This document shows positions 3,001 to 54,500 of a DNA stretch of 64,000 nt, piece after piece (within the stretch, counting starts at the first letter, position 1; every line of letters starts with the position of its first letter). Source of the DNA: Rebecca billardiae RCC1528 (lineage: Eukaryota; Protista; Haptophyta). Location of the stretch: positions 3,038,001-3,102,000 of the forward strand of contig OZ251225.1 in assembly GCA_965240325.2 (NCBI GenBank), in the 5' to 3' direction. The notes below the pieces were generated by a model. It ran no database searches. It had not been told where the DNA came from and saw only the letters and a program-made list of their open reading frames with translations. Made by a program: the position numbers and the translations under genes.

Positions 3001-6000
3001 CGTGCGCGTGCCGTTCGCCGACGTCTCCGTCTCGTTCGCCAGCAGCTGCACGCGCACCTGCCCGGCCGCCTGTGAGACGGGCACCGGGCACACGATGCGC
3101 GTGCGGTTGATCAGACTCACGTCCACGACCGAGCCGCCGCCAAACACGCACTTGATCAGCTCGCGCTTCGCCGCGGCGGCGCCGAAGCCGGAGCCGCGGA
3201 TCGTGAGGCTCGTTGCGTCGCCGATCGCCGCGCCCGTCGGCGTGACGCCGTCCACCTGCGCGTTGGCGAACGGGTCCTCCGGGTAGGTGACCGAGAGCGA
3301 CGCGGCCGACCAGAGCCGCGCGCGCTGGCCGGCGAACGCAAAACAGAGCTGCAGCGCGGACGCGACGTCGGCGAAGGTGAAGGTGGCGACGCCGGCGTCG
3401 CTCACGTTGGTCGGCGCGCCGCTGAGCGAGCCGCCGCCGCCCTCGTCGCACGCGCTCGCGCCCGCGGGCACCCACCACGCCGCGTCGCCCGGACCGACCC
3501 CCGGACCCTCGAACGAAACCGCCTCGGGCTGCAGCTGCACCGCGATCGTCGCAAACGGCCCGGTGATCTCGAGCACGTCGAGCGTGAAGTTGGCGTAGTG
3601 CTTGTACGGCTTGGCCGCGGTGAAGCGGTAGCACAGCTCGTACGCGAGGCCGCCCTGCCCGCGCAGGAACGTGAAGCTCGACGAGCCCGCGGCGGAGACG
3701 GGCTGCGCGCCGCCGAACGCGAGCCGCGCGCCGCCGTCGCACCCGGCCGAGCCCGCGGCCACCCAGAAGGCCGCGTCCGCGCTGCTCACGCCAAAGCCGA
3801 CGTAGCCGACGCCGACGGGCGCGCCGACGAGCGTGCGCGCCGCGCCGGTGGTGCCGAACAGCGCGAACGTGTCGAGCGTCACGTTGGCGTAGTGCACGAA
3901 CGGCTCGGCGCCGAAGCGAAAACAGAGCGACGCGCGCGCGCACGCGTCAGCGCCGCCACCGCACGCGTCGGCGCGCACCGTGAAGGCCGCGGCGCCGTCC
4001 GCGTCCACGGCGAAGAGGCCGCCGTACGCGGCGCGCGCCCGCGCGCCCGCGAGCGTGTCGGGCGTGCAGTCCGCGCCGTCGAGCACCCAGAACCCCGTGT
4101 CGTCCTCGCGGATCCCCACGCCCTGCAGCGGCAACGACTCGGCCGCGTCCGCGACCGCGAGCGTCTCTGCCGGTCCCTGCACCTGTGCGGCGACGAGCGC
4201 GCGGCCGGCGTAGTAGCGGTACGGCTCGTCGGCGTGCTTGTAGCACAGCCGCGCGTCGGGCTCGGGCGCAAGCAGCGCGAACGTCGCGGTGAGGTTCGCG
4301 TCGAGCGGCTGCTCGCCGCCCAGCCATGCGCGCGGCGCCTCCGCCGCGCACGCCACCTCAGCGGTGCCGTTGCGCGGCACCCAAAACGCTCGGTCGCCCG
4401 CGCGCAGCCCGACGCCTCCAAACGCGATGGGCTTGGGCACTGCGCCGACCACGCCGAGCGCGGAGGTGGGCGTCTGCACGCTCAGCGCGTCGAGCGTGAG
4501 CGACGGGTACAGCACGAACGGCTCGGACGGCGCGGCGGCGGTGTGCGCGAAACAAAGGCGCAGCCCGAGCCCGGCGAGCGTCGGCGCGAACGTCGCGCGC
4601 AGCGACGCGTCGAGCGTGCGCGTGCCGCCGTACGCGCTCGACGGCTCGCCCGCGCACGCCGTCGCGCCCGCGCGCACCCAGCGCGCGCGGTCGCCGGGCG
4701 CGACGCCGTACCCGCCGAACGCGAGCACCTCCGGCACGCGCGCCACGAGCACCGACTCGGCCGGAGATTCGACGCGGAACACCTCGAGCTGCACGCCGCC
4801 GTACTCGACGGTGCGCGCGGCGGCGGAGGGCGCGGCGGCGGCCGCGTGCGTGTAGCACAGCCGCGCGCGCCCGCCCGCCGTCGTGCCGGCCGGCGTGAAC
4901 GCCACGCGGCCGTGCCCCGCCGTCGGCGCGGGCACGACCGGCTGCGCGCCGCCCAGCGCGGCCGACGGTCCTTCCGCGCACCCGGCCGCGTCCGCGCGCA
5001 CCCAGTACGCGCTGTCGCCCTCCGCGCCCAGCCCGGCGCCCTGCAGCGTGAGCGTCTCGGTCGCGCCGACCACCGCGACGGTGAGCGCGGGCCCGCTCAC
5101 CGTCACCACGCCCAGCTCGAGCGCGGGCGGCGCGGCCGCGCCGTACAGCCGCGGCGGCTGCTGGCCGAAGCGAAAGCACAGGTGCAGGCCGGCGCCCGCC
5201 GCGCCGAGCGGCGCGCTGAACGACGCGGCGCCGTCGGCGCCGACGGTGGCGGGGCCGACGAGCGCGCCGGCCGCGTCGGCGGCGCACGCGGCCGCGCCCG
5301 CGCCCACCCACCACGCCTCGTCGCCCGCCGCGACGCCCACGCCCTCGAAGCCGATCGGCGCGGCCACGCCCGCGATCAGCGTCGTGTTGGTCGGCCCGCT
5401 GAGCGCGTACGCGCGCGCGCCCACGCCGCCAAACCGCGCGGGCGCCTCGCCCTCGAACGCGAAGCACAGCTCGAGCCTCGCGCGGCCCTGCCCGTCGAGC
5501 GGCGGCCGCGCGGCGAGCGTGAAGTTGGCGGCCGAGCCGTCTGCACCGAGCCGGCCCACGCCGCCGTACTCGGCGCGCGCGCCGCCGTCGGCGCACGCGG
5601 CCGCGTCGTCGGGCTCGACCCACCAGAACCGGTCGGCCGCGCCGAGGCCGACGCCGCCCAAGCTCAGCACCGCCTCGACGCCCACGACGGCGGCCGTCTC
5701 CGCGGGCGTGAGCACCGCGAGCACGTCGAGCGTGACCGCCGCGTACAGCACAAACGGCCCGCCATCGACCGAATAACAAAGGCGGCGGCCGAGGCCGGCG
5801 GCGCCGACGGCGTGCGAGAGAGTGGCGGTGCCGAGCGAGCTGTTGGCCGCCGTGGCGCCCACGGTCGCGCTCGCGCCCGCGTCGGCGCACGAGGCCGCGC
5901 CCGCCGGCACCCAGTACGCGCGGTCGGCGAGCGACAGCCCCACGCCCGAGTGCACCACCGCCTCCGCCACGCCCGCGACCGCGCGCGTGCGCGCCGGGCC

Positions 6001-9000
6001 CGTCACGCCGCGCGCCACCGCGGTGAGCTGTGGGTAAAGTGAGTACGCGCCCAGCCCGGCGAAGCGGTAGCAGAGGACGAGCTCGGGCCGCGGCGCGCTG
6101 AACGTGAGGCTCGCGCTGCCGGCCGCGCCCACGCTCGCCGCGCCGCCGTGCGCCGTGCTCGCCGCCGCGCAGCCCGCGCTCGCCGCGGCGTCGGGCGTCA
6201 CCCACTTGAGCGCGTCGCCCGCGCCCACGCCCACGCCGCCGAGCGCCAGCGCGCGCGGCACGCCGCGCGTGAACGCGAGCGCGGCGCCGCCGGGCAGCGG
6301 CTCGAGCCCGAGCACGTCCAGCGTGCGCGCCTCGTACGGGGCGAACGGCTCGCCCGCAAAGCTATAGCACAGCACGAGCCCGAGCTCGGCGCCGTCGGCG
6401 AAGACAAAGTCGGCGCGCGAGCCCTCCACGTCCGCGCTCGCCGCGAAGGCGGATGGGTCGGAGCAGTTGGGCGGCGCGCGGGCCCACGCGGCGCGGTCGC
6501 CGCTCGCGACGCCCGTGCCGCCGAACGAGAGCCGCACGCTGCCGCCCGGCGCGGTGGGCGCCGCCACGCGCGCCGCCGAGGTCGAGGCGAGGTGCAGCAC
6601 GTCGAGCACGATCGTCGGCTCGAGCGCCCATGCGGTTTCGGCCGGCGCTCGGTAGCAGAAGGCGTAGGCGAAGCCGGCGGTGTCGAACGCCCAGGACGTG
6701 CGCCCGTCGGCGGGCAGGACCACCCCGTCATCGCCGCCGAAGCTCGGCTCGGACGGCGCGGAGCAGTTGCGGCCCCAGCGCACCGCCGAGCCCGCCGGCA
6801 GCCACCACTCGGGAGGGATGGTGAGCGTCTTGGCCACGCCCTGCACCGCACGGTACACCGTCGTGTTGGCGCGCGCGGGCGGCGGCGGGCTGGGCGGCGG
6901 CGGCGCGGGGCTGGGCGGCAGCGGCGGCGGGCTCGGCGGCGGGCTCGGCGGCGCGCTCGGCGGCGGCGGGCTCGGCGGCGGGCTCGGCGGCGGGCTCGGC
7001 GGCGGGGCCGGCGGCGGGCTCGGCGGCGCGCCCGGCGGCGCGCCCGGCGGCGGCGCGGGCGGCGGCTCAAAGTAGACGCAGCCGGAGGGCGAGGGCTCGA
7101 AGGTGGCGCTCGAGTCGTAGTTGGTCGCGTTGGCATCGCGGCAGCCCGGGTGCAGCTGCGCCGGCGCCGCCGCGAGCTCGAAGCCCAGCTCCTCGCTCAG
7201 CGACGCCACGGTCGCGTTGGCGAGGCTCGCTGACACGTCCACCTGCTGCGCGCTCGCCGGCTGGTACGCACTCAGGACGACCTCGACCGAGGCGGGCGAG
7301 ATCGCCTCGACGCGCCACTGCGCGGCGGGGACGCCCGTCAGCCGCGACATCCCCGACTTGAGCTCGGCCTGCACCTGCGGCGTCACGTCCTCCGCCGTGC
7401 CCTGCAGCGTGAGGCCGACGTAGGTTGTGCTGCCCGGCGGCGGCGGCGCGGGCGAGGGCGGCGGCGCGGGCGGCGGCGGCGGCGGCGGCGCGGGCGGGCG
7501 CGGCGGCGGGAAGGGCTCGACGCGGGGCGGCGGCGGCGGCGAGCTCGGCGGCGGCGGCGTGGACGGTGGCAGCGGCGGCGGGGAGGAGGGCGGCGGCGGC
7601 GAGGGCGAGGGCGGCGGGGGCGGCGAGGGCGGCGGCGCGGGCACGGGCGGCGGCGTCGGCGGCGGCGACGGCGGCGGCGACGGCGGCGGCGTGGGTGGCG
7701 GCGGCGGCGGCGGCGCGCCTGGCGGCGGCGAGGGCGGCGGGCTCGGCGGCGCGCTCGGCGGCGGAGGGCTCGGCGGCGGCGAGGGCGGCGGCCGCGGCGG
7801 CGGGCGTGGCGGCGAGCCCGGCGGCGGCGGGCTGGGGGGTGGCCCTGGCGGCGGCGCGGGCGGCGGCGACGGCGGCAGCGCGGGTGGGCTCGGGCTTGGC
7901 GGCGGGCTGGGAGGCGGCGACGGCGGCGGTGAGGGCGGCGGCGACGGCGGCGGCGTCGGCGGCGGGCTCGGCGGCGGCGACGGCGGCGGGGTGGGCGGTG
8001 GCGGTGATGGCGGCGGCAGCGGCGGCGGCGAGGGCGGCGGCGAGGGCGGCGGGCTCGGCGGGGCCCGCGGAGGAGGCGAAGGGGGCGGGCTCGGCGGCGG
8101 CAACGGACGGGGCGGCGGGCTCGGAGGCGGCATGGGCGGCGGCAAGGGCGGCGGCGTCGGCGGCGGCGGCGACGGGGGCGGGCGGGGTGGGCTTGCCGGC
8201 GGCGGGCTCGGAGGCGGGGTGGGCGGCGGCGGCGAGGGCGGCGGGCTCGGTGGCGGCAACGGAGGCGGCCGCGGCGGCGGCGAGGGCGGCGAGAGCGGAG
8301 GCGGCGGGCTCGGCGGCGGAAATGGTGGCGGGCTGGGCGGTGGGCTCGGCGGGGAAGACGGAGGCGGCGGGCTGGGCGGCGGGAAGGGCGGCGAGCTGGG
8401 CGGCGGGCTGGGCGGCGGGCTCGGCGGCGGCGGGCTTGGTGGCGGCACTGGCGGTGGTCGCGGAGGCGGGCTGGGCGGCGGCTGCGGGCTCGGCGGCGGG
8501 CTCGGCGGCGGGCTTGGCGGTGACGCTGGCGGCGGGCTCGGGGGCGGCGCCGGCGGCGGCGCCGGCGGCGGCGACGGCGGCGGGCTTGGCGGCGGGCTCG
8601 GAGGTGGGCTCGGCGGCGGCGTTGGGCTGGGAGGCGGGCTCGGCGGCGGGCTCGGCGGGGGGCTCGGCGGCGAGCTCGGCGGCGGCGAGGGTGGCGGCGA
8701 TGGCGGCGGGCGCGGGCTCGGAGGTGGGCTCGGTGGCGGCGTGGGGGGCGGAGACGGAGGTGGGCTCGGCGGCAGCGATGGCGGCGGCGAAGGTGGCGGA
8801 GATGGTGGCGGCGGGCTCGGCGGAGGACTCGGTGGCGGTGCGGGGGGCGGAGAAGGCGGGGGGCTCGGAGGTGGTGACGGCGGTGGGGTGGGAGGCGGCG
8901 GCGGCGGAGGCAAGGGCGGTGGGCTCGGCGGCGGGTTTGGCGGCGGCGATGGCGGCAGTGACGGCGGGGGGCTTGGCGGGGGGCTTGGAGGCGGCGGCGG

Positions 9001-14601: not shown

Positions 14602-15049
14602 GGCGGTGTCGATGAGGCCCCACACAAGCTTCGCAACGGAGCGAACGGCGGCGTGGCGAGCGAGAGAACTAGTTCTCGGTTACGACGAGTCGGTCGGTTT
14701 CCGTTTCGATAGCGGCGCCTGCGCACGAAAATAGCACCCGAGCAACGGCATATCGTTTTGCGGGTACAGGTGGGTACTCCGTGCTGCCGAAACGCGGGCT
14801 TGTCGAGGCGGTCGCTCGGCATGCGCTTTTCTGGCGCGGGATTCTGACCATCAGGTTTCCGAACAGCCGAGGAAAGTTGCAGGAAATCTGTGGCTTCGTC
14901 ACCGCGTGCTAAACGCCCGCGGCGGAAGGCGGACCCTTTGTGTGTGGTACGATCGTGCAGCTCAAGAACAAGTAGCGCGGCCGGTTCTGCTCGGCGCGTG
15001 CCAGCGGGTGAATCGCGCGGATCAGCGCAGCCTCCCTCCCCCTCCGTTG

Positions 15050-18000
15050 ATGGAGACGCTCAAGAAGATGGCGAGCTCGCCTCGCTTCTCGCTCGGGAAG
15101 CGGCGCGGCAGCGCCGAGGACGCGACGCTCGACGGCGACGACCTCGCGCGCGGCGTCGCCCACCTCAACGACGCGACCATCCTCAAGACGCTGCACGAGC
15201 GGTACGACTCGGGCGTGATCTACTCGTCGGTGAACCGCATGCTCATCGCCGTCAACCCGTACGCCGACCTCGGCCTCTACACCTCGCAGCGCCTGGCCGA
15301 GTACGCCGAGCTCGCCGCCGAGCGCGCGCCGCCGCCGCACGCGTACGCGATCGCGGCCGCGGCGTACAAGGGGCTGCTGGCAGGGGGCTCGCAGTCGATC
15401 GTGATCACGGGCGAGTCCGGCGCCGGCAAGACCGAGACGGCCAAGCGCATGATGCAGTTCCTCGCGTACATGGCCGGCGCGCACGTGGGCGACGCGACCG
15501 CGAGCCTCAAGCTCGAGCTCGGACCGTCCGACGACCGCAAGTCGGCGGCCGCGCTGCACGTGACGCTGCTGCGCACGAACGCGGTGATGGAGGCGTTCGG
15601 CAACGCGCGCACGACGATGAACGACAACTCCTCGCGCTTCGGCAAGTTCCTCGCCGTGCAGTACGACGCGTCCGCCAAGCTGCTCGGCGCGCAGATCAAC
15701 ACGTACCTACTGGAGAAGACGCGCGTCGTGCGGCGCGGCGAGGGCGAGGCGTCGTTCCACGTGCTGTACATGGTGCTGCTCGGTCTCGGCCCGTCGGAGG
15801 CGGGGCAGCTCGCGCTCACGCCCGACCCGCACGCCTACCGCTACGCGCGCCTCCGCGGCGCCGAGCTCGACGGCTCGGGGCGCGAAGGCCTCTCATGGCC
15901 CGCGCAGCTCGCCGAGGTGCGCTCCGTGCTCACCGGCGCGATCGGGCTGGGGGCGGCGGACGTGTGGGCGATCCTCGGCGTGCTCGCGGCGGTGCTGCAC
16001 TGCGGGAACATCGACTTCGCCACGCCCGCCTCGGGCCACACCTCCACCGGCGCCGCGCTCAACGAGGGCGCGCTCCGGCCGCTGCGCGCGCTCGCGACGC
16101 TGCTCGGCATCGAAGCGGGCAAGCTGTGCGACGCGCTCACGACGCGCTGCATCCGCGCGGGCACGGAGTGGGTGACGAAGCCGAACACGACGCGCGAGGC
16201 GACGGACCTGGCGGACGCGCTGGCGAAGCAGCTGTACGCCCGCGTCTTCGACCGCGTCGGCGCGGCGATCAACGCCGCGATCGGCGTGGGCCGCGCGGCG
16301 GCGGACGGCGGCGCGCCCACGGCGTCGGGCGCGGCCGCGCCGGTCGCGCACTCGTTCATCGGCATCCTCGACATCTTCGGCTTCGAGCTGTTCGCGGAGA
16401 ACTCGCTGGAGCAGCTGCTGATCAACTACACGAACGAGCAGCTCCAGTCGCTCTTCAACGGCGTCGTCTTCGCCGCCGCGCTCGCCGAGGCGAAGCTCGA
16501 GGGCGTGTCGATGGCGGCGTTCGACGAGGGCTCGGTCGACAACCGCGACGTGCTCTCTCTCTTCAACGCAGAACGGGTCGGGCTGGTGCCCACGCTGAAC
16601 GAGGAGTGCATCTTCCCGAAGGGGTCGGACGAGTCGTTCGTGGCCAAGTTCAAGCGCGCCAACGCCAAGAACGCGCGGCTCGTCGACGACTCCTCCAACG
16701 CCAAGGCCGACCCGAAGGGCACGTTCACGGTCCGCCACTTTGCAGGGCTCGTCACCTACTCGGCGGAAGGGTTCCTGCTCAAGAACAAGGACCCGTTCTC
16801 GGAGGACCTGGCGGCGCTGCTGCGCGGCTCGTCCGAGCCGCTCGTCGGCGCGCTCTTCGCGCCGCCCACCGCCGAGCGCACCTCGTCCAAGCGCTCCGGC
16901 GCCTTCCAGCGCCTCGTCTTCCGCGGCGTCGCGCCGCAGTTTGAGGCCCAGCTGCAGCGGCTGCTGCGCGTGCTGCGCGCGTCCCAGGTGCACTTTGTGC
17001 GCTGCGTCAAGCCGAACGGCGAGAAGGCGGCGCGCAGGTTCGAGGACGAGCGCGTGCTCGCGCAGCTGCGCTGCGGCGGCGTGATGGAGGCCGTCCGCGT
17101 CTTCGCCGCCGGCTACCCCGACCGCATCCCCTTCGACACCTTTGCGGCGCGCTACGGCCTCTTGGCCGGGCCGGCGTGGGCGGCCGAGTGGGGCGCGCCG
17201 CCCGCGCCGCCCAGCCCGGCGTCGAGCGGCTCGGCGGGCGGCGGCGGCGGGAGCGGCGGCGGCGCGGCGGCGTCGGCGGAGCGCGTGCGCGCCCTCCTCG
17301 CCGCGATCGCCATCCCGCCCGAGCGCTACGCCCTCGGCCACTCGAAGCTCTTCCTCAAGTCGGGCGTGGCGCCCGAGCTCGAGCTGCGGCGCGAGCGCAA
17401 GGTTGCGGCGCGCGCCGTGCAGTGCCAGGCGGCCGTGCGCGGGATGCTCGCGCGCGCGCACGCGCGGAGGCTGGCCGCGGCGGCGCGCGAGAGCACCGAG
17501 CGCCGGCGCAAGGCGGACGAGTCCGCGCGCGCCCTCGACGAGCTCGAGCGCGCCACCGAGGCCGAGCGCGTGCGCGAGCGCGAGCAAGAGGCGGCGCGCG
17601 CTCGCGAGGAGAGTGCTCGCGCGGACGAGGCGGCGGCCGCGGCCGCGGCCGAGGCGGCGCGCTCGCGCGAGGCGGAGCGCGCGCGCGACGCGGAGCTGCT
17701 CGCCGCGCGGCAGCGCGCCGCCGAGCTCGAGGCGGCGCTCAGCACCGCGCGCACCGAGGCCGACGGCCTGCGCACGCAGGTGGCCGCCGCCGCGACCAAT
17801 CCCGCCGCGGCCGCGCCGCCGCCGCCGCCGCCGCGGCCGACGACGCCCCCGGGCGCGTCCGCCGCCGCCATCGAGGAGGCGAAGGCGACGGCGAAGCGCG
17901 CGCTGGAGGAGGTGTCCGAGCTGCGCGCCGCGCTCGAGCGCGCGCGCGACGAGATCGTGCGCGAGCGCGCCGCCAACGAGAAGCGACGCTCCGAGGCGGA

Positions 18001-19880
18001 GACCACCAACCGACGCTGGCAGGCGGAGGCGCAGCGCGCGTCCGCCGAGCAGCGGCGGCAGGCGGCGCTGCGCGACGCAGAGCGCCGGCTGTACCAGGAC
18101 AAGCTGGACGACCTGACGTGGGAGCGCGACTTCTGGCGCGAGGAGACGCACCGGCGGTACCTCCAGGAGGCCGCCGCCGCCGAGGCCAAGCGCCTCGACC
18201 TCGAGCGCGCGCAGCGCTCGACCGCGGGCGCGGTGGTCGACGCAGTCGTCGGCGCGGCGTCCGCGGCCGCGTCGGTCGCGGGCAGCATGCTCGGCCGCGG
18301 CGGCGGCGGCCCGGGCGGCGCGCGCGCGATCGGCGCGGCCGACCCGTCGGACGCGAGCATCGAGTTCACGCCGCTCGTGCCGCCCGGCGTGCAGGACGTC
18401 AACCCGGTCTGCCGCCCCAAGGGCTCGCCGGGCAAGGGCAAGCGCGGCGGCCGCGGCCGCGGCGGCCGTGGCGGCGGCGGCGCGGGCGGCGCGGGCGGCG
18501 GCGACGCAGCCGCCGCCTCCGCCGCCGCAAAGGGGGGCGCCGCTGCCTCCGCCTCGTCGAGCGTCGGCGGCGCGCCCGCGGCGGCGTCTCCGTGGTCGGA
18601 CGAGGTGCTCGAGTACGCCGAGTACATGGGCCTCGACCCCGCCACCGACGCCGAGCTCATGTGGATCGCAGACGATCTCCGCTCGGCGCCGCTCCCGCCC
18701 GGCTGGGCGCTGCAGCGCGACCCCACGGGCGGTCTGTACTTCTACAACGAGGTGACGGGCGAGTCGATGCTCAAGCACCCGCTCGACCTGCAGTACAAGC
18801 AGCTGATCTCGGAGCACCGGCTCGAGCGCGCGATGACCGGCGCCAAGCCGCCCCCCGCCGAGTCCTTCGGCACGATGACGATCCGCTCGATGGAAGACTC
18901 GCTCCTCGTCGTTCCAGGCGCCGAGACGCACGTGAGCGCGCGGCTGGCCGTGCCGTCCGCGCCCGCCGCCGGCTCGGCGTCGGCCGCCTCGCTGCTGCTG
19001 CCGCAGTACGTGCTGCACACGGTGCTGATGGCGCGGCTGATCCCGGACCGCACCGTCCCCGAGACCGTCCCCATCCTCTGGGCCTCCTGCCTGCAGCAGG
19101 ACGCGCACACAGTGATCTTCTCTCTCGCGCGAGAGGTGTACGCGGCCGCGCGCGCGCGGGCGGACTGGAGCGCGCGCGGAGGAGGAAGCGCGCGCGGAGG
19201 AGGAAGCGCGCGCGGATGCGCGGGGCGCGGAAGCGGAGGAAGGGTGGGCGCGTGGACCCCCGCGCCGCCGCGCCGCGCGCCGCCGTCTGAGCCCACGCCG
19301 CGCCCCCGCCCGCTGCGCGCGTTCGCGCGCGCACGCACATGCGCCGCAGGCGGACGGCTCCGAGTTTGCGTGCGTCGTCGCGCGCAACGCGTGCGCGCGC
19401 TCGACTCTGTACGTGACGGAGGAGGGCGCGGCGGTGGAGAAGGAGACGTCGGCGGTGGTGCTGCGCGAGCCGTTCAGCGGCGCGGGCTTCGCGCACGTCG
19501 ACGTCGTGCTGCCAATGCCGCGCGCCGACGGCAAGGCGGGCGGCGTGCCCTGCAAGCGGCGCGAGGAGCAGCTCCTCAAGCAGTACGAGGCCGGCAAGAA
19601 GGGGCAGCTGGTCGTGCTCTGCGGGCAGGTGAAGGCGGACAGCCGCTCGCTCGAGGCGACGCTCGCGCTGCCCAGCCGCGCGGCCGGCGCGGGCGGCAAG
19701 GCGAGCGCGCCGCTCATGCAGATGCGCCAGAGCGCGGGCGGCGCCGACATGGAGGTCAAGTACCGGGACAAGATCACGCCGGTGCAAGTGATGCACGTGG
19801 TGCTCACGCTCTCGCGCTGGTGGAGCATGCGCCAGGCAAGCCGGCCGCGCGGCGCGTCGCACTCGTCGCCCTCGCACTGA
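15050..19880 (+). CDS. Unconventional myosin heavy chain: motor, IQ, coiled coil, CEP164-like WW region, divergent Tubby-like tail. Exons 15050-19135 and 19350-19880
   Basis: P-loop GESGAGKT, switch I NDNSSRFGK, switch II DIFGFE, HFVRCVKPN, QLRCGGVMEAVR; IQ-like VQCQAAVRGMLAR; WW LPPGWALQRDPTGGLYFYNEVTGESMLKHP. Phase-0 intron 19136-19349 (GAG|GTGTAC...CGCAG|GCG) joins into the 19413..19880 frame. Confidence 0.93.
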
Positions 19881-20425
19881 GCGAGTGCGCGCGCGCGCCG
19901 TCAGCCCCGGCGAGGCTGGCAGCGCAGCAACTCAAGAGGCAGCGCAGCAACTCAAGATCAATTCAGCTGAACATCTCCGTACGACCATGTATTCGGCGCG
20001 CGAGCGACGCGCCTGTGCCGCGGCACTCCACGCCTGCCGCTCGGCGCTGAGCGCGCGCTGCACTGCAGTCTCAGCGCAGCTCGACTCGAAGCTGCCGCTG
20101 ATCGACAACGCAGCAGTATCCTATACGATCGAATGACACCACGATCATAAACGGCGTACAGTGTAGCAGTACTACGACATGTAGCGAGCAGCGCTCACGA
20201 CTATATCTACCGAGACCGAGTCTTAGCGCGCGGCGCGCCGCGCGGCCCGCGCGCGCAGCCGACGGGCCGCCACGCGCCAAGCGCCGCCTCGATATCATCG
20301 ATCACCAGGCTGCTCAGACGAGCTGCAATAGCGCAGCCAGCGCATGCATATACTGCTACGTATATACTACCGGCTTACCGCACGATATATGCTGCGAGGC
20401 CCGGGCGGCTCTCCGCCGGCCGGCG

Positions 20426-22783
20426 TCAGGCTGAGTCGCTCGTCGCGTGCTCTCTCATCACGCCCTCACGGCTCAGCGGGGCGCTCAGCCAGGCAGTAGT
20501 CCTGCTAGCAGCGGTAGTACCTGTGGCAGCGCGGGCTGCCGCCCGGCGGGCGGCGGCCGGCGTTGGCCAGAGCATCAGCATGCGCAGGTTCGTCGTGAGC
20601 GGCGAGAGGAGGTCGTCCACGTCCTCATCGCGACGGGTTTGCTCGCGCGACTTGCCTCCGCCCATGCCGAGCAGCGGAGGCGGCGGTGGGAGCCTGGGCG
20701 CGCCGACCACGTGCGGCGAGAAGGCGTGGTAGCAGAGCAGCCGGTCGGTGTCCGGCTCCGAGCGCACGGAGGCGTCGAGCCCGAGCGCGCGGCACTGCGC
20801 GAGCACAGCGTCGAGCAGGCGTACCGCCGCGCGGAGGTGCTCCTCGGTTGGCAGCACCTGCGGCGCGCTGCCACCGTCGGCGTCCGCGCTGCCCGGCTGC
20901 ATCTGCGCCGCATCGGCCGCGTCCTCCGCATCCTCTGCGCTCAGGACGACGCGCGCGCTCAGCACGGCGCGCGAGATGCGCACCCCCTTGGCCCGCAGCT
21001 TCTTGAGCTCTCTGACGATGCTGAAGCCGAGCCGTGCGGCAGTGTCGACGTGGCGCACGCCCACTCGCACCGGGACCACCAGCGTGTCCGCCGCCGCGGC
21101 CTCGCACCGCCCGTCCGCCATCCGCGCGCGCAGCGCGCCGAGCAGCGCCGGCAGCGCGTACTTGGACGCGCGCGCGAGCAGCACGCCGTTGCGCCCCTCG
21201 TAGCCGACGAGCCGGGCGTACCCTTTGAGCGAAGCGCGCTCGTCCGGCCGGGGCGAGAGCGTCGCCTCGAGGTGCGAGTCGTTCAGCTCGCGCATGGCCT
21301 GCCTGTCTATCGTGGCCGTGTTCGCCAGCGCCTCGCGCAGCGCGGTGCCGCGGTACTGCCGCTGGCAGAGCACACTGATCGCGTCGAGTCGCCACCGCCG
21401 GCCCGCGGCCTGCACGACGTGCGGCACGCGGTACGCGCCCTGCTCCGTGACGATCGCAAAGCGGAACGCCGGCGCGTCGGACGCGCGGTCCGCGTGCGCC
21501 GCGCTCTCGTGCCAGCGCGTGTTCGCGCTCAAGCAGCGCGCGATGGGATCGGCGCAGCGCGCGCGCGGGCCGGCCCTGCACGCGAGCGGGCACGCGCATG
21601 CGCTCGGCCGATCGTTCGGCGGCGGTTTTCTGCCCTTCTCGTCGGCCCAGGCGGGCCGGGCGAAGCCCACCTTGCCGCGCAGCAGCTGCACGAAGAGCGG
21701 GAACCCGCTGTGCACGCCCGTCACCACGTGCGGCGACATGGTGTAGTAGCACAGGTCCGCGTCCGCGTCCGGCTCGGAGCGCACGCGCGGCCGCAGCCCG
21801 AGGCCGCGCATGTGCTGCACGATCTGGTCGACGGCCTGCGCGGAGAGGGCGTCCTGGCTCGGCTTGCGCATGTACGTCGGCCGGCCGTGGTGCAGCATGA
21901 GCGGATTCGTCGCATAGTTCAGCACGCCCGACACCACCGCGCGCCGCACGACGACGCCCTTGCGCCGGAGCGTCGCCAGCTCGGCGTCCACTCGCTCGAG
22001 CAGCGGCGGCACGGAGTTTTTGTCGACCGCGTCGCCGAGTCGCGTGTAGATGACAAGCGTGTCGAGCGAGGCGGGCGCGCACCGGCCGTCGCGCACGCGC
22101 GGGCGCATGCCGTACACGAGCAGGCTCAGCGCCTTGGGCAATCGGAAGACAAGGCCGTTGCCGCCGTCCGTGCCGGTCAAACGCACATGGCCCGCTGGGG
22201 ACAAGCGCGGGTTGTCCGAGCGTGCGGCGAGGGCGGCCTCAAAGGCGTCGGCGCCGCGCTCGCGCACACGCGTCTGTACCGTCTGGTGGTCGAAGAGTGC
22301 CCACCGCTCCATCGCCTCGCGCAGCAGCGTGCCGCGGTACCGCTCCTCGCACAGCACGATCGCCGAGTCCAGCCGCCACCGCTGGCCGCGCCCGCGCGCG
22401 AGGTCAGAGATCCGATAGACTGTGTTCCAGTCGAGGATGGCGAGACGGTAGTGCAGCGCGTCGGCAGGGCGGCCGTCGCGCGGCGGCGTGTACCAGCGCA
22501 CGCGCGGCACGCACCGCGCGATCGGGTCGAAGCAGTGCGACGGGTCGAGCGTCGAGGTGGGCTCGCACGTGCGCGAGCACGCGCACGCCGTCGCGCGGAG
22601 CCGCAGAGACTGGTTGACGACGGTGGACGGGACGCCGTGCGTGCCCGGCTCGACAGTGAGGCTTACCGTCCCGTCGGGCAGGTAGACGCGCGGCTCGGGC
22701 GCGCGTGGTGTGCCATCCGCGAGACACCCCCACGCCAGCACGGTGGCCGCGAACAAGCGCGCCATCGTTGGTGGCACTGTCAT
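20426..22783 (-). CDS. Secreted/type II protein with two tandem fucosyltransferase-superfamily (GT11/GT23-like) domains
   Basis: 785-aa ORF with hydrophobic N-terminus. Internal duplication (RWRLDSAIVLC..YRGT, DTLV, VRSEPD, SPHVV each twice). DTLVIYTRLGD and DLCYYTMSPHVVTGVHSGF resemble the HxRxGD and D..S..SxF nucleotide-sugar motifs. Gene existence is more certain than its function. Confidence 0.6.
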   Translation of the reverse strand: MTVPPTMARLFAATVLAWGCLADGTPRAPEPRVYLPDGTVSLTVEPGTHGVPSTVVNQSLRLRATACACSRTCEPTSTLDPSHCFDPIARCVPRVRWYTPPRDGRPADALHYRLAILDWNTVYRISDLARGRGQRWRLDSAIVLCEERYRGTLLREAMERWALFDHQTVQTRVRERGADAFEAALAARSDNPRLSPAGHVRLTGTDGGNGLVFRLPKALSLLVYGMRPRVRDGRCAPASLDTLVIYTRLGDAVDKNSVPPLLERVDAELATLRRKGVVVRRAVVSGVLNYATNPLMLHHGRPTYMRKPSQDALSAQAVDQIVQHMRGLGLRPRVRSEPDADADLCYYTMSPHVVTGVHSGFPLFVQLLRGKVGFARPAWADEKGRKPPPNDRPSACACPLACRAGPRARCADPIARCLSANTRWHESAAHADRASDAPAFRFAIVTEQGAYRVPHVVQAAGRRWRLDAISVLCQRQYRGTALREALANTATIDRQAMRELNDSHLEATLSPRPDERASLKGYARLVGYEGRNGVLLARASKYALPALLGALRARMADGRCEAAAADTLVVPVRVGVRHVDTAARLGFSIVRELKKLRAKGVRISRAVLSARVVLSAEDAEDAADAAQMQPGSADADGGSAPQVLPTEEHLRAAVRLLDAVLAQCRALGLDASVRSEPDTDRLLCYHAFSPHVVGAPRLPPPPPLLGMGGGKSREQTRRDEDVDDLLSPLTTNLRMLMLWPTPAAARRAAARAATGTTAASRTTAWLSAPLSREGVMREHATSDSA

Positions 22784-43119: not shown

Positions 43120-45976
43120 CCGCTGGCCCAGCGCGCGCGCGCGCGTGCGCACGCTGTGAGCGCCCAGCGCGCGCCCTCGCGCACGTCCTGGGCGAGGTTG
43201 ATGCCCACGTCCAACCCGATTGCAAAGAGGGTGGGCTCGTCCTCCGCCGACTGCCGCGCGAGGATGTACGCGTCGATGACGATCGCGAGCAGCACGTTGA
43301 GCAGCAGCAGGTAGCACGTGGCAATGTACAGCCTGGCGGGCAGCAGGGCGCGCGGGTGAGCGCGGCGCCGGTGCGTGTGCGCGGGGCGGCGCGCGTGCCG
43401 TGAGCGACGGCGGGCGCGGGCCGCCGTCCCCGGGGTGCCTCGCCCGCGCGCACGTGCGCGCCCGCGCGCCCCGGTGCCGTCTCCTCACCAGAAGAAGACG
43501 TGCCCGATCTGCGCGAACTCGAGGTCCGTGAACGCGCGGTGGTCGAACGCGCCGATCAGCACGAGCAGCAGCGTGGACACCGCGGCGCCGAGGGTGTTGA
43601 ACGCGTCGCTGCTGCCGAGCAGCAGCGTCGCCGCCACGCCGAAGCCGAGGGTGATCAGCGAGAAGAGGACGAAGAAGTAGGAGAGGTCGGCGCGCGCGTT
43701 GGCCACGATGCTCGAGATGGTCGACAGCCGGCGGTGGAAGAGGCAGTACTGCGGAGGCGGCGGGGCAGGCGGAGCGGTGGCGGCGCGCCAAGCAGCTCGG
43801 CCGCAAGGCGCGCGCGCGCACGCGCGGCGCGTGCGCGCGCGCGCACGCGCACCTTGAACATGCGCTGCAGCAGGCACACGATCGCGAAGCTGCCCGCGTA
43901 CGCCATGGACGAGGACACGGCGCTCGAGTCCATCACCAAGAACGTGAGCGTGACGAGCGCGCTCAGCAGCACGTTGTCGTCTGCGCTCAGGCTGCCGCTG
44001 CTGGACGTGCGCGCGTCCACGACGGTGAAGACGGCGTTGGACTGCGCGGTGTACGCCTCGAGCACGCCCGCGAGCACGGCGTACCCCCAGCACGCGCCGA
44101 GCGCGACGAGCTCGATGAGCAGCCAGAGCGGGTGCTGCGCCGCGTGCTCGGCGGCGCGCAGCGCGCGCGCCGCGCCGCCCGAAATGTGCGAGCCCCAAGT
44201 GCTCAGCCCGAGCATGTTTGAGCCGACTGAGGTGCCGAAGGCGGAGCGCTCGCGGAGGAGCAGCCGGCGGCCGCGCGACACGCGCTTGCGCAGCTGCGCC
44301 AGCCACGCCTTCAGCCGCGCCTCGAGCTCGGACTGGCACGCGACGAGCGCGCGGCCCGCGCGCAGCAGCAGCAGAACGGAGTCGAGCACGATCAGCCCAA
44401 ACACGACGATTGTCAGCGGCCGGCCGCGCACACGGAACTCGAGCGGCGTCGAGGCGACGTGGAGCGAGCGCTGCACGGCGCCGCCCGGGGTGTAGTCGAA
44501 GCGCGCGCGCGCGCTCGCGAACCGGCCGATATTGCCGTTGTACACGTTGAGCGTGAGGAAGATGGACGCGGTCGAGAGGTCGAGCCAGCCGTCCGCGCGC
44601 GACTGCGCGAGCACGCTCGCCGAGAAGCCGGGGGGCACTCCGCCAAACTGGCCGACGTCGAGCGGCAGGATGAAGAGGAGGCGGCTCGGGATGTCGTCGA
44701 TCAGCGCGTCCGTCGACTCGTACACCGTGCGCTCGCCGCCGATCTCGCCGAGCGGCCGCACCCCCGAGTCCTCGCCCTCGCCAAACTCCGCCGGCCGGTA
44801 CACCGTCCCAGACAGCTGCCCGCGGAACGGCTCGGACGAGAGCCGCGAAGGGTGGACGCACCGCTCGAGGAAGCGCTCGTACCGCGGGCACTCGCGCGTG
44901 TCGTACCGCGCCTGCCACACGAAGAGGCCGCCGATGATGCGGTTCGACTTGTCCAGCATCCCGCTCAGCAGCTCGCCCGCTGGCTCCGCCTCGAGCCGTC
45001 GGCGGCCGGGCGGCGTGCGCGGCGCGCGCGCGCTCGGCTGCGGCTGCGGCTGCGGCCGTGGCTGCGGCGGCGGCGGCGGTGGCTCGTCGGCCGAGGCGAG
45101 GGCGCGTGCGCCGCCCGAGGTGGCGTTGCTGCCACCGTCCCGCGCGGCGCACGCGGGCTCGGCCGGAAAGACGGTGCAGTGCGCGTCGATCAGCGCGGCA
45201 CAGGCCGTCGCGGCCGACGGCACTTCCTCGGCCGCGGCCGAGCTGTTGCCCTCCGAGCTCGCCGCGGGCGGCGCGCTGCCGTCGGCCGCCCACGGGGCGC
45301 ACACGGTGTTGGCGCACGGGTTGGTCGGCCCGGGCGCGGCATACGCGCACGGCGCGCCGCCACCGGCGCCCGCTGGCGGCGCGAACGTGGCGCAGGCCGC
45401 GTCGGACGGGTGCGCGGCGCAGTGCGCGCCGATCAGCCGCGCGCACGCGGCCGCGTCCGCGTCCACACGCGCGCCCTCGCCGAAGAGCGTGTGCGCGCAC
45501 ACGGCGTTGAGGCACGGGGACGTGGGCGCGCTCGCCGCGCCGAAGGGGCAGTACGTCGAGCGCATGAACGTGTCGTAAGACGCGCGGTCGCGCCGCGCCT
45601 GGCCCGTGTCGTACAGCGCGCGCGACAGCGCCTCGATGTACGCCCACGTGCTGTCGATGTCGACGACGTCCTCGCGCGTGGTGGGGAGCTGGTCCGAGTC
45701 GAACGCCTCGACCAACTGGCGCTCCATGCGGTACGCCGCCTGCTGGTTCGTCGTGATGCTCACGAAGCTGATGATGACCGAGACGTACCCGAGATACCCG
45801 AGCCAGCTCGCAAAACCGCTGCGCCGCCGCCGCGCGACGTGGATCGAGGCGAAGAGCACGGAGAGCGGCACGCGACGTGCGAGCATGCGCTTCCGTACCG
45901 CCTTCCCGCGCCACACCGCAGCCATGCGAGTGGCCGCCCGCACGCCCGGCTCGCTGGGCGTCGCGGGCGTCTCCAT
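42372..45976 (-). CDS. PKD2: Polycystin-2 / TRPP-family cation channel, paralog A, ~1114 aa. Exons 45976-43853, 43748-43489, 43332-42372
   Basis: TOP-domain DGWLDLSTASIFLTLNVYNGNIGRF...FDYTPGG; S4 LLQRMFKYCLFHRRL; S5-pore-S6 DLSYFFVLF...FNTLGAAVSTLLLVLIGAFD...FFWLYIATCYLLLLNVLLAIVIDAY. Two frame-preserving GT-AG introns. Symbol is family-level. Confidence 0.9.
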
Positions 45977-46171
45977 CGCGCCGCGCCGCCGGCTGGCAAG
46001 CTGGTAGTACGGCCGCGAGCGCGCGCGCCGCGCGGAGAAGCACTTGTGGTCTTAGTACGGTAACGCCCACCGTTTCTTTACAGGAGCATCTAGATACAGT
46101 TTACTAAGAATACAGGTGCATCTAATCTCCCGTCACGGTCGAGCACCCCTCGCTAGGCGAGGGGTGCGGCG

Positions 46172-50062: not shown

Positions 50063-51565
50063 ACGTCGTCGCCGCCATCGTCTCTGCCGTCATTGCCGCT
50101 GCCCAGCCAGTCTCTGGGTATGTTGTCGCGCGCGGTCGTCGCGCTTGAACACTGCTACATCAGCAGGCCGGGTGGCGATCCCAGGTGCGCATGGCAACGG
50201 GTGTCAAGCAGTGTCGTCCGCTGATCGACAGGTGTACGTTCCCTACACCCATGCTGCTGCTCGGGCTCTGGCGAGTCTGGCAGAGCTGTCGGCACTGCAC
50301 ACGCGCGGGCTCGCGCGTGCACACGCGCGAGCTCGCGCACTCGGACAGTGACACTGTTATTAGTCACTGTAGCATAGATTATTACAAGTGCAGCGCACTA
50401 CTGCTGCGGAGTGAACAGCACGCACACAGCCATGGGCTCGGCATGCCTAGCACGGCCGTGAGACGGGCGGGCACGGCTGCGCTAGGGCGGCCCAGGCTAC
50501 TGCATCAACTGCCCCTGTCGCTCGCCAACACTCTAGCTGGGCCTGCTAGCTCAGCTTGTACGCATGCGGGGCCGGCGCTCAGTCGGCTCGGCGCAGTCAC
50601 TGCAACGGGCAATAGCGCTTTGTGCCCCGCTGGCCCGCCTGCTGGCGCTGCGCCAAGGTCAGCAAAGCTGTGGGCCCAGTGGGCGCGGACAGCAGCACGC
50701 GCCGCGCGCCGCATGTCTGTGCGCTGCCAGCTCGCGCACTCAAGGGGCCGCAGCCAGTGGTCATGACTGCAGCAGAACTGCAGAAGGGCACTCCAGCACC
50801 GCCGGCATGAAGACGAATGAGCGCTGAGCATGGCGAGAAACGAGTGCGACCGGCTGAGCAGAGATGCCGGCTGAAAGGTAGGCTGCTGCAAATGCATTGC
50901 CCTCGCGTGCCGCTAGATGCCGCGCCGCCTTCGTGGGCCGACCGGGCGGGCACGGCGCCCGCGCGGCTCGTGCGGCCCACGCCCGACTCTAGTCGAGCGC
51001 CGGCGGCGAGGCGCGCGAGCGGTCGATGGGCAAGCCCTCCGTCACGAGGCGGCCCGGGCGCGGACAGAGCGGACTGTCGTACCTGCCACAGCCCTCCGCG
51101 CGGGATCCGCCGCCAAAAGCGCTCGAGAGCGCCCATCCAAGCCCAGCGGCCGTCCGTGCGCGAGCGCAGCCGCTGCGCCGCCAAAGACTAGCACAGAACG
51201 CGCGCGGCGCACCGCCTCGGGCGTCGAGGCGAGGGAGCCCGGCTCGCTAAAGCCTGTGGCGGACACGCTCGCCCAGGCGCCGCCGACCTGAAACGCCCGA
51301 CTCGCTCACGCGCCCGGCGAGCGGGCGCGCAAACCTCGCGCGCCGCGCCGCCCGGGTCGCGCGTGCCGCGTGCCGAGCGCACGGGCGGCGAGCAGGCCGT
51401 GAGCCGGGCTGAGCGCGCGCTGCGGGCTCCTACGCGCGGCTGGCAGCCCGCCCAGTCCGAGCGCGCGGCCTCGCGGTGGCGCCAGTGGCCGCGAAGCTGC
51501 GGCCAGCGCGGCGGCGCGCGGCCACCGCTGTGCAGCAAGCAAGAGTGGGTCGGTTGCCTCGCACC

Positions 51566-54500
51566 ATGGCGGCCGCGCTCCTGGCGCGGCGGCGATCCAA
51601 GGAGCGCCAAGAGCTCCAGCTGCAGAAGGAGCAGGAGGAGCGCCGCCTGCACGATGAGCAGGACATGCTCTACGCGGCCACCCGCATGGCCGCCGTGTGG
51701 CGCGGGAAGCTCGTGCGCAAGCACAAGGTGGAGCGCCGCGTGCCGGTGAGCGCGTTGATCACGTCCATCCACGTCGCGCGCGTCAGGCGCCAAGGCTTGG
51801 TGCAGTTCGTCGTGTACCTCGCGTACGTTGCCGTGCTCGCGGTGTTCACCTACACGAGCTTCGACCAAGGCACGGCGCTCGCCGTGGAGAAGCAGCTGCG
51901 CGCCGCGTTCGACTCCGACTCGCTCGGCACGAAGCGCTCGGACGTGGTCGACCTCGACTCCGCGTGGGGCTACATCGAGTCGGTGGCGACGACGCTGTAC
52001 GACGAGGGGCAGCACGTGCGCAATGCCGCGAGCTGGAGCGCGTTCCTCACCTCGGCGTGCCCCTTCACCGCCGACACACCCAGCTCGCCGTGCCAGAACA
52101 GGGCGTGCTCGACCACGCTGCGCGGCGGCACGCCCAGCGCCGCCGAGGCGGCGGCGTGCAACGCGCTGATCGGCTCGCACTGCGCGGCGCACGCGGACGA
52201 GTGGTACTGCGGCGTGCTGGCGGCACAGTCGCCCCCGGCCGGCGCCGGCGCCACGTTTCCGTGCGCGTACGCCGACGCCGGCCCGACCAACCCGTGCACC
52301 AACGCGGCGTGCGCGCCGTGGGCGGCCGACGGCAGCGCGCCGCCCGTTGACGGCGCCAACTCGACGGAGGACGGCTCGGCAGCTGCGCGCACGCCGGCGT
52401 CCGTCGCGTGCGCCGCGATCATCCGCGCGCACTGCGCGGCCTTTCCGGCCGAGCCCGCGTGCAACGCGAGCGCGCCCGCCGCGTCGAGGCGTCTGCTCGA
52501 GCGCCCAATCGAGGCGGCGCGGGGCAGGCAGGCCGGGCGCGCGGCCGCCGGCCGGAGGCTGAGCGGCGACGCTGACGACGACGACAAGCCCGACGACCAG
52601 GATCGCGTGGCGATGGTCGACGCGTCGAACAAGGCCATCGGCCCGCTGCTCGTGTGGCACGCGCGCTACCGCGTGGGCACCTGCGAGCGCTTCAGCACGT
52701 TCCTGCGCACGTGCGTGCGGGCGGGTGCGTACTCGCGCGCCGGCTTCACGGGCGCACTCACCGGCCGGAGGTACACACCCGGCCGCGTCGAGGACGCGGA
52801 CCTGGGCGTCGACATGAGCGCGCGGCCGGACGAGACGCTCCCGGACGGCACGCCCAGCGTGTACACCACCTTCGAGCCCCTCGTCGACGACATCTCGCCC
52901 GACGACCTGTACATGATGCCCGTGGACGTGGGTAATTACGGGGTGCCGTTGAGCACGGTGCTGACGCTCGCGCGGCGGCACAGGGCGGACGGGTGGCTGG
53001 ACGAGTCGCTCTCGGTGCTGCTGCTCACGCTGAACGTGTACAACGCGAACGTGCAGCGCTACGCCAGCGTGCGCGCGCGCTTCGACTTCACCCGCGGCGG
53101 GCTCGTCGAGCGCTCGCTCCGCATCGCCACCACGCCGACCGCCTTTTGGCTGCGCGCGCGCCCACTCGCGTGGGCGGTGCTGGTGCTTCTCTGGCTGGAC
53201 TCTGCGCTGCTGCTGGCGCGCGTGCTCCGCGCGCTCGTGGCGTGCTCGCACTCGCTCAACGAGCGCCTCGAGGCGTACCTCGAGAAGCTGCGCAAGCGGA
53301 TGGACCGGGGCGCGCGCGTGCTGCGCCGCCAGGCCACCTCCTCATCCTCGCTCGGCTCCGTGCAGAGCGGCGCGCTCCGGCGCTGGGGCGGCGCGGCCGA
53401 GCAGAGCGAGGCGGCGAAGGCGCTGCGCGCGGCGGAGCAGGCGGCGCAGCGGCCGTGGTGGCTCGTGGTCGAGGTGCTCGCGATCCTGGCCTTCTGGTAC
53501 TACGTCCTCCTCGCCTTCTCCGTCGAGGAGCTCACGGCCGAGACCAACACGCTCTTCGAGTTCATCGCGCGCCGCGGCACGTCGGACACGTCGGCCGCGG
53601 TGCTGAGCAAGATGGTGACGCTCACCTACCTGGTGATGGACACGGCGCGGAACGCCTACTACATGAGCTACTCCGCGAGCATCGCGATGCTGTGCCTGCT
53701 GCAGCGCATGTTCAAGGTGCGCCTGCGCGCGCGCGCGCGCGCAGCCCGCGGCCGCGCGCGCCCTGAGCAGCGCGCGGCCGCACTGCGCGGCGCTCTCCGC
53801 CTGCCCCGCCGCCTCCGCAGTTCTGCCTCTTCCACCGCCGGCTGTCGACCATCTCGAGCATCGTGTCCAACGCGAGCGCCGACATGTCCTACTTCCTCAT
53901 CCTCTTCGTGATGATCTCCGCGGGCTTCGCCGTCGCCGCGACCATGCTGTTCGGCAGCACAAACGCAAAGTTCACGACGATAGGGGCGTCCGCGTCGACA
54001 CTCTCTCTCATCCTGCTCGGCAGCTTCGAGCACGCCGAGTTCGTCGCCCTCGACCCGCCCGAGATGGGGCACGTCTTCTTCTGGTGCGCGCGCCACCGCG
54101 CCCTCGCCCCCGCGCCGAGCCGCCCGCGCGTCCACGCCCTCACGGAGCGCCCGGCTGGGCCGGCGCTCGCGCGGTGCCATCGTCCGCGCCGGCGCCGCCC
54201 TCGCGCGCGCGCCCCGCTGCCCGCCAGGCTGTACATCGCCATCTGCTACCTGCTGCTGCTCAACGTGCTGCTCGCCATCATCCTCGACGCGTACATCCTC
54301 GCCAAGCAGTCCGCGGTGGACGAGCCGACGCTCGGCGCCGTCGCGCAGGATGTGCTGATCAACTCTGCGCACGACGCGCACGACGGCTGCCGCTTCGTCG
54401 GCAAGCTGGCCGTGCGGCTGTGGGCGCGCCGCGCCCGGCGGGCCGAGGAGGCGGCGGAGGCGGGTGCCAAGGCAGAGCGCGGCGAGGCGGGGGGCGCGGG

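Follow-up and report, generated by a model that had tools for sequence, protein, structure and literature searches.

The locus raises the question of what the C-terminal tail of a haptophyte myosin is, where it came from and what it may bind. The window, which is the whole stretch of 64,000 nucleotides from Rebecca billardiae RCC1528 that was analysed, contains on its + strand a myosin gene with two coding exons (CDS 15050-19135 and 19350-19880) encoding 1538 amino acids. The sequence-only reading proposed that the end of this protein is a divergent Tubby-like domain, visible only after splicing, and that the gene is a myosin-Tubby fusion with altered lipid or cargo specificity. In our preferred reading (probability about 0.88) the gene encodes a two-exon haptophyte unconventional myosin whose C-terminal Tubby barrel descends, in divergent form, from the Tub domain of its sister myosins, which are of class XXI type.

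Coding exon 1 (15050-19135) runs from the Met of METLKKM to TVIFSLARE with no in-frame stop. The frame itself opens at 14906 and the start is placed at the Met at 15050; a single BLASTP HSP joins residues 49-1410 of the 14906-19135 ORF to residues 1-1370 of the orthologue P0001. The G+C content of the window is so high (60-84%) that little weight was given to open frames on either strand. The myosin motor domain (15155-17359, residues 84-818 of the 14906-19135 ORF) matches Pfam Myosin_head (PF00063) with an E-value of 6e-168. It is followed by a single weak IQ motif (17414-17464), for which the Pfam IQ E-value is 0.48 in the window and 0.0025 at the same position in P0001. The next segment (17465-18690) is an Ala/Glu/Arg-rich helical and low-complexity stalk, recognised from the composition of its translation and a gappy alignment to the P0001 stalk; this composition, rather than a coiled-coil computation, suggests that the stalk forms a coiled coil. 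A WW domain (18692-18766, residues 1263-1287) matches PF00397 with an E-value of 2.5e-6 and 27.9 bits, against a cut-off of 26.9. The helical segment EYAEYMGLDP...LMWIADDL (18595-18690), which precedes the WW domain, is conserved and is common to every tail-family relative reaching that far upstream.

The tail proper is divided between the two exons. Its N-terminal third (18872-19135), holding strands 1-4 of the predicted barrel, is 72% identical to residues 1278-1370 of P0001. The C-terminal two thirds (19350-19835), holding strands 5-12 and the central C-terminal helix ITPVQVMHVVLTLSRWW, are 67% identical to P0001 residues 1371-1531. A short basic extension and the stop codon (19878-19880) complete exon 2 at 19836-19880. 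A domain is thus present at 18990-19880, where it had been placed, but its real start lies upstream of 18990, the first barrel strand being VSARLA at 18932-18949. The peptides on which the proposal was built all occur in the frames given for them: LPQYVLH (18998-19018) and TVIFSLARE (19109-19135) in exon 1, ADGSEF (19350-19367) and CVVAR (19371-19385) in exon 2, and further exon-2 peptides STLYV, KETSAVVL, VDVVLPMPRADG, EEQLLKQYEAG, QLVVLCGQVKA, LMQMRQ, MEVKY and the stretch beginning ITPVQVMHVVL that ends at 19835.

Homology to Tubby is found with profiles built from the tail family and not with the curated model. Pfam Tub gives no match at E-values up to 10 for either exon or for the P0001 tail, and every tail-family member falls below its threshold, the best score in the family being 14.3 bits against a gathering threshold of 27. 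Such a sub-threshold score is a limit of the curated model and not a structural criterion. A phmmer search of PDB sequences with the tail likewise returns nothing at E 10, and the same search of 1.84 billion representatives returns six matches, none of which is a canonical Tubby protein; wherever one of the six extends sufficiently far towards its N-terminus, its tail is preceded by the same WW unit or by myosin sequence. When tail-family profiles of 9 rows (A1) and 18 rows (A6) are searched against PDB sequences, TULP3, TULP1 and Tubby are matched with E-values of 2e-5 to 1e-3, collinearly over almost the whole domain. Profile A1 has no match outside Tubby/TULP up to E 10, and the next match of A6 has an E-value of 0.07. 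When Tub domains recognised by Pfam in related myosins serve as hhalign templates, the probability is 96.6% (E 5e-10) for three of them and 98.1% (E 1e-13) for seven. An HMM of these seven myosin Tub domains gives exon 2 of the window, taken by itself, a score of 26.1 bits. The claim that the domain is revealed only by splicing is therefore overstated, since the spliced orthologue remains invisible to Pfam Tub while unspliced exon 2 is detected by the myosin-Tub HMM. A scan of metagenome contigs with the tail-family alignment A5 gave no confirmed locus.

The fold was predicted on P0001, which serves as a joined proxy for the two parts of the tail; the exons of the window were searched separately. 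The AlphaFold2 input was an 18-row, family-only alignment, from which canonical Tubby sequences and templates were left out. The resulting model (pLDDT 81.2, pTM 0.81; single-sequence AlphaFold reaches pLDDT 34, too low to be of use) has 12 strands and a C-terminal helix at residues 229-250. The seven best Foldseek matches of this model are all Tubby or TULP1 (E 5e-10 to 6e-8, TM 0.61-0.70), the next having a TM of 0.27, and a shape search of the ESM Atlas returns PF01167 clusters at TM 0.71-0.73. VIA-align superposes the model on Tubby and TULP1 with Z 20.4-20.9 over 186-213 residues at 2.9-3.7 Å, covering model residues 6-247. The prediction therefore bears out the expected 12-stranded barrel with a C-terminal helix, and because the P0001 model matches Tubby/TULP1 in all three comparisons, the finding that would have spoken against the proposal, a fold other than a tubby barrel, was not obtained. 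The collinearity with Tubby is real, since family profiles, hhalign and structure comparison agree. Together these results support the tail as a Tubby-fold domain homologous to Tub and fused to a myosin.

The tail and the C-terminal domains of Tubby, TULP1 and TULP3 (PDB 1c8z, 1i7e, 1s31, 2fim, 3c5n and 8fh3) have in common the 12-stranded barrel around a C-terminal helix and, in the collinear profile match, a terminal helix motif resembling Y-x-x-P-x-x-x-Q-A-F. At 12-18% identity they also differ, the tail having a shorter hairpin after the helix and neither an equivalent of K330 nor the basic patch at 301-305. The N-terminal partner is a myosin in this gene, whereas in Tubby/TULP proteins it is an IFT-A-binding or F-box region.

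Two alternatives bear on the nature of the tail and on its connection to the motor. The barrel could fall outside Tub proper, in the LURP-one-related/DUF567 or scramblase branch of the Tubby-like clan. A language-model feature search does return LOR/LURP1 and scramblase clusters at 0.84-0.87, which is a lead only, and the LURP-one-related protein At5g01750 (PDB 1zxu) also has a Tubby-like barrel with a central helix. That protein is, however, a smaller domain, has no sequence-profile match to the tail and gives VIA-align Z 12.1 against about 20.5 for Tubby, on which ground membership of LURP1/scramblase was rejected; generic 12-stranded barrels remain below Z 9. The restriction of the profile matches to Tubby/TULP chains, the hhalign result for Tub domains and the presence of Pfam Tub at the same place in sister myosins also speak against this assignment, which we regard as very improbable. 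Equally improbable is that exon 2 forms a small gene of its own, or that the ORF reads through the supposed intron, so that this genome would hold no myosin-Tubby fusion. Gene callers do report the exon-2 part as stand-alone products (P0011 in the window, P0009, and a 181-aa 'hypothetical protein' of Pavlovales sp. CCMP2436), and the + strand frame of exon 1 meets no stop in the intron and runs on to 20050, but at 75% G+C chance alone would produce such frames. The barrel is complete only with both parts, its strands 1-4 being encoded by exon 1, and uninterrupted orthologous ORFs join the WW domain, the exon-1 tail and the exon-2 tail.

The fusion of the two exons into one reading frame, on which the preferred reading depends, is supported by these relatives. 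The proposed intron (19136-19349) is a phase-0 GT-AG intron of 214 nt (GTGTAC...CCGCAG). P0001, the single relative recovered by a word-based homologue search with the WW domain and exon-1 tail, is an uninterrupted ORF of 1535 aa on two 5-kb JGI contigs (L001/L002), from which the intron is absent. Exon 1 aligns to its end at P0001 residue 1370 and exon 2 resumes at 1371; residues are neither lost nor gained at the junction, which is thus exact. P0002 and P0008 likewise read uninterrupted across the junction. An intron interrupts the identical codon boundary in two other loci, L003 (1876-2000, 125 nt, with an in-frame stop inside) and L004 of Pavlovales sp. CCMP2436 (7046-7182, 137 nt). Position and phase are thus kept in three genomes while intron sequence and length vary: the three introns are unrelated in sequence, in contrast to the conserved exons, and no intron has a length divisible by 3. 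The window intron also contains 2.7 perfect copies of an 18-nt tandem repeat (19169-19216). The intron as originally modelled is in this way upheld, and the relatives strongly indicate that it is spliced in Rebecca billardiae itself.

The Pavlovales sp. CCMP2436 orthologue (GCA_026770615.1 MU631691.1, L004:3376-7683) is annotated in pieces, as a 495-aa Myosin_head model and the separate 181-aa protein carrying the Tubby tail, with runs of N between them (5678-6926).

Class XXI myosins, common to heterokonts and haptophytes, are known to carry tails with IQ, WW, PX and Tub domains (Sebe-Pedros 2014, PMC3942036). The motors nearest to that of the window are, in order, P0001 and P0017, then P0018 and P0019 of Prymnesium parvum together with P0020, then myosins of the WW, Tub, WD40 or PDZ kinds. 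P0018 and P0020 have tails of this divergent family, and the named relatives are haptophytes (Pavlovales sp. CCMP2436, P0010; Prymnesium parvum, P0018 and P0019). Among the next-nearest motors, the tails have WW and Pfam Tub, Tub and WD40, or the protein has an N-terminal PDZ. The domain order is the same in P0021, P0042 and P0034, with Myosin_head first, then WW, and always after WW the Pfam Tub domain (E 1.6e-23 to 2.3e-53); they resemble this gene in having a motor, a stalk, a WW domain and a C-terminal Tub barrel. In P0022, P0024, P0027 and P0030 the Tub domain is followed by a WD40 propeller, and P0034 has N-terminal EF-hands in addition to WW and Tub.

A quick maximum-likelihood tree of 32 motors, with SH-aLRT supports only and some long branches, places the divergent-tail myosins in one clade (100) that is sister (96) to Pfam-positive Tub myosins, and both clades nest within a WW/Tub/PDZ clade (99). 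The architecture, the nearest motors and the published description suggest that the gene is of class XXI type, the tree itself containing no labelled class XXI references. The proposed myosin-Tubby fusion is therefore real, but its architecture is one already described for class XXI (PMC3942036). Searches of the literature for myosins with Tub and WW domains, and for myosin together with tubby in haptophytes, returned no paper. Where the class XXI Tub domains pass Pfam, those of this clade reach about 14 bits at most. Most class XXI Tub domains keep the G-K-L-R motif (exceptions being P0024 and P0027 at the Arg and P0030 at the Lys-Leu), whereas this clade has sequences resembling V-V-A-R.

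This last difference concerns the ligand site. We take the mouse residue numbers used here to fall on the motif as placed from the mouse sequence and the cited paper. In mouse tubby the canonical PI(4,5)P2 pocket is formed by K330 and R332, and a second, basic PI(4,5)P2 patch at residues 301-305 is needed for cooperative binding (PMC10445746). The K330A/R332A substitution almost entirely abolishes PI(4,5)P2-dependent clustering of tubbyCT in animal cells (PMC10445746). G-K-L-R is not recognisable in the tail, and three alignments give three different registers. The hairpin of model strands 5 and 6 and the EAFCGKLRC of the sister clade favour aligning VVAR with GKLR, which places the motif in the strand-5 segment CVVAR (19371-19385); the register there rests on the model strands and a by-eye comparison with the sister-clade GKLRC, and differs from those of hmmsearch and hhalign. 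In the favoured register the Lys position is Val and the Arg is kept, being conserved throughout the family; every tail-family member has Val, Leu or Met in place of the Lys. In the collinear alignment the position of the 301-305 patch would be occupied by the loop QQDAH (19094-19108), which has no basic residue. The earlier statement that K-L-R is missing thus holds for the motif as such and for its Lys, but the Arg may remain, given the ambiguous register.

A second feature reported as missing was the NFHGRV block. The tail family indeed lacks an 18-residue hairpin after the helix that is present in P0042, P0034 and animal Tubby, the site of the deletion in the window being CGQV (19620-19631) by the hhalign gap. 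The Gly of that block is kept, however: the residue following the deletion (G176; GQV, 19623-19631) is nearly invariant in the family. The same 18 residues are also absent from the Pfam-positive sister clade P0021/22/24/27/30. The deletion consequently predates the divergence of the tails, is not the reason why Pfam fails and is not special to this gene. The family has its own conserved motifs, namely P-M-P-R-A-D-G, L-S-L-P and R-Q-x-A-G-G-A-D-M-E.

What the barrel binds can be read in more than one way. With the Lys and the basic patch lost, we lean slightly towards a tail clade in which canonical PI(4,5)P2 binding has been given up and another lipid or a protein may be recognised; an altered ligand specificity is plausible on the basis of these substitutions. 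Since the register around K-L-R varies between the three alignments, loss of lipid binding is a tentative reading. Less likely, the tail is a genuine Tubby domain with its PI(4,5)P2 binding intact and docks the motor on the plasma membrane in the manner of the canonical tubby domain, its divergence having no functional effect. The fold is preserved in the model, an Arg conserved across the family stands at the place of R332 in the favoured register, and the domain is still net basic, at about +5. The hydrophobic residue at the Lys position in all members, the QQDAH reading of the cooperative-binding patch and the effect of K330A/R332A in mouse tubby (PMC10445746) argue against this reading. 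The position of R332 varies even in accepted Tub domains, P0024 and P0027, both Pfam-positive, reading GKLS. Net charge and pI were dropped as a proxy for lipid binding, accepted Tub domains spanning pI 5.3 to 9.4.

A bolder and improbable form of altered specificity is that in this haptophyte-wide subclade the barrel has ceased to sense PI(4,5)P2 and become a receptor for a different ligand, and that the protein is an actin-based motor for Tubby-mediated transport of polycystins. It draws on two weak matches to polycystin channels within 35 kb of the myosin gene and on the fact that animal TULP3 and TUB carry polycystins into cilia (PMC5350516). The family-specific motifs P-M-P-R-A-D-G and L-S-L-P-(S/K) would be candidate sites for a new ligand. 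The adjacency of polycystin-like matches by itself shows no functional link. These matches, PKD_channel (20.7 bits) and Polycystin_dom (21.2 bits), are below the Pfam threshold, at 43488-46070 (- strand) and 51476-53908 (+ strand).

Returning to the class XXI-type myosin with a divergent Tubby barrel, the motor is followed by one IQ motif, then by the long helical stalk and the WW domain, and the protein ends in a predicted barrel whose 12 strands surround a helix. By analogy with tailed myosins, the motor is probably a dimer held together by the stalk. A partner with a proline motif would be recruited by the WW domain, and the barrel, by comparison with tailed myosins and tubby domains, may anchor the motor to a membrane or cargo. 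The myosin-WW-Tub design has been known since 2014 (PMC3942036) and this myosin reveals no new kind of system; what appears to be new, from sequence comparison, is a monophyletic, haptophyte-wide subclade in which Tub is invisible to Pfam and both G-K-L-R and the basic patch seem to be lost. A domain catalogue that relies on Pfam counts too few Tubby tails among haptophyte myosins: P0018 of Prymnesium parvum is named only as myosin-motor or hypothetical, and the tail in Pavlovales sp. CCMP2436 is a separate 'hypothetical protein'. The myosins also form a natural series for the residues that make a Tubby barrel a PI(4,5)P2 reader, from full Tub (P0042 and P0034), through Tub that lacks the hairpin but has G-K-L-R intact (P0021 and P0022; the motif is altered in other members of the sister clade), to Tub that lacks both the hairpin and G-K-L-R in this clade.

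Two further observations concern the DNA beyond the myosin gene. An ORF of 785 aa that begins with ATG lies directly downstream on the opposite strand (20426-22783, - strand); it has no Pfam match and shows an apparent internal two-fold repeat. Just past the myosin stop codon, the 3' UTR contains a perfect tandem duplication of 20 nt (two copies, 19918-19957).
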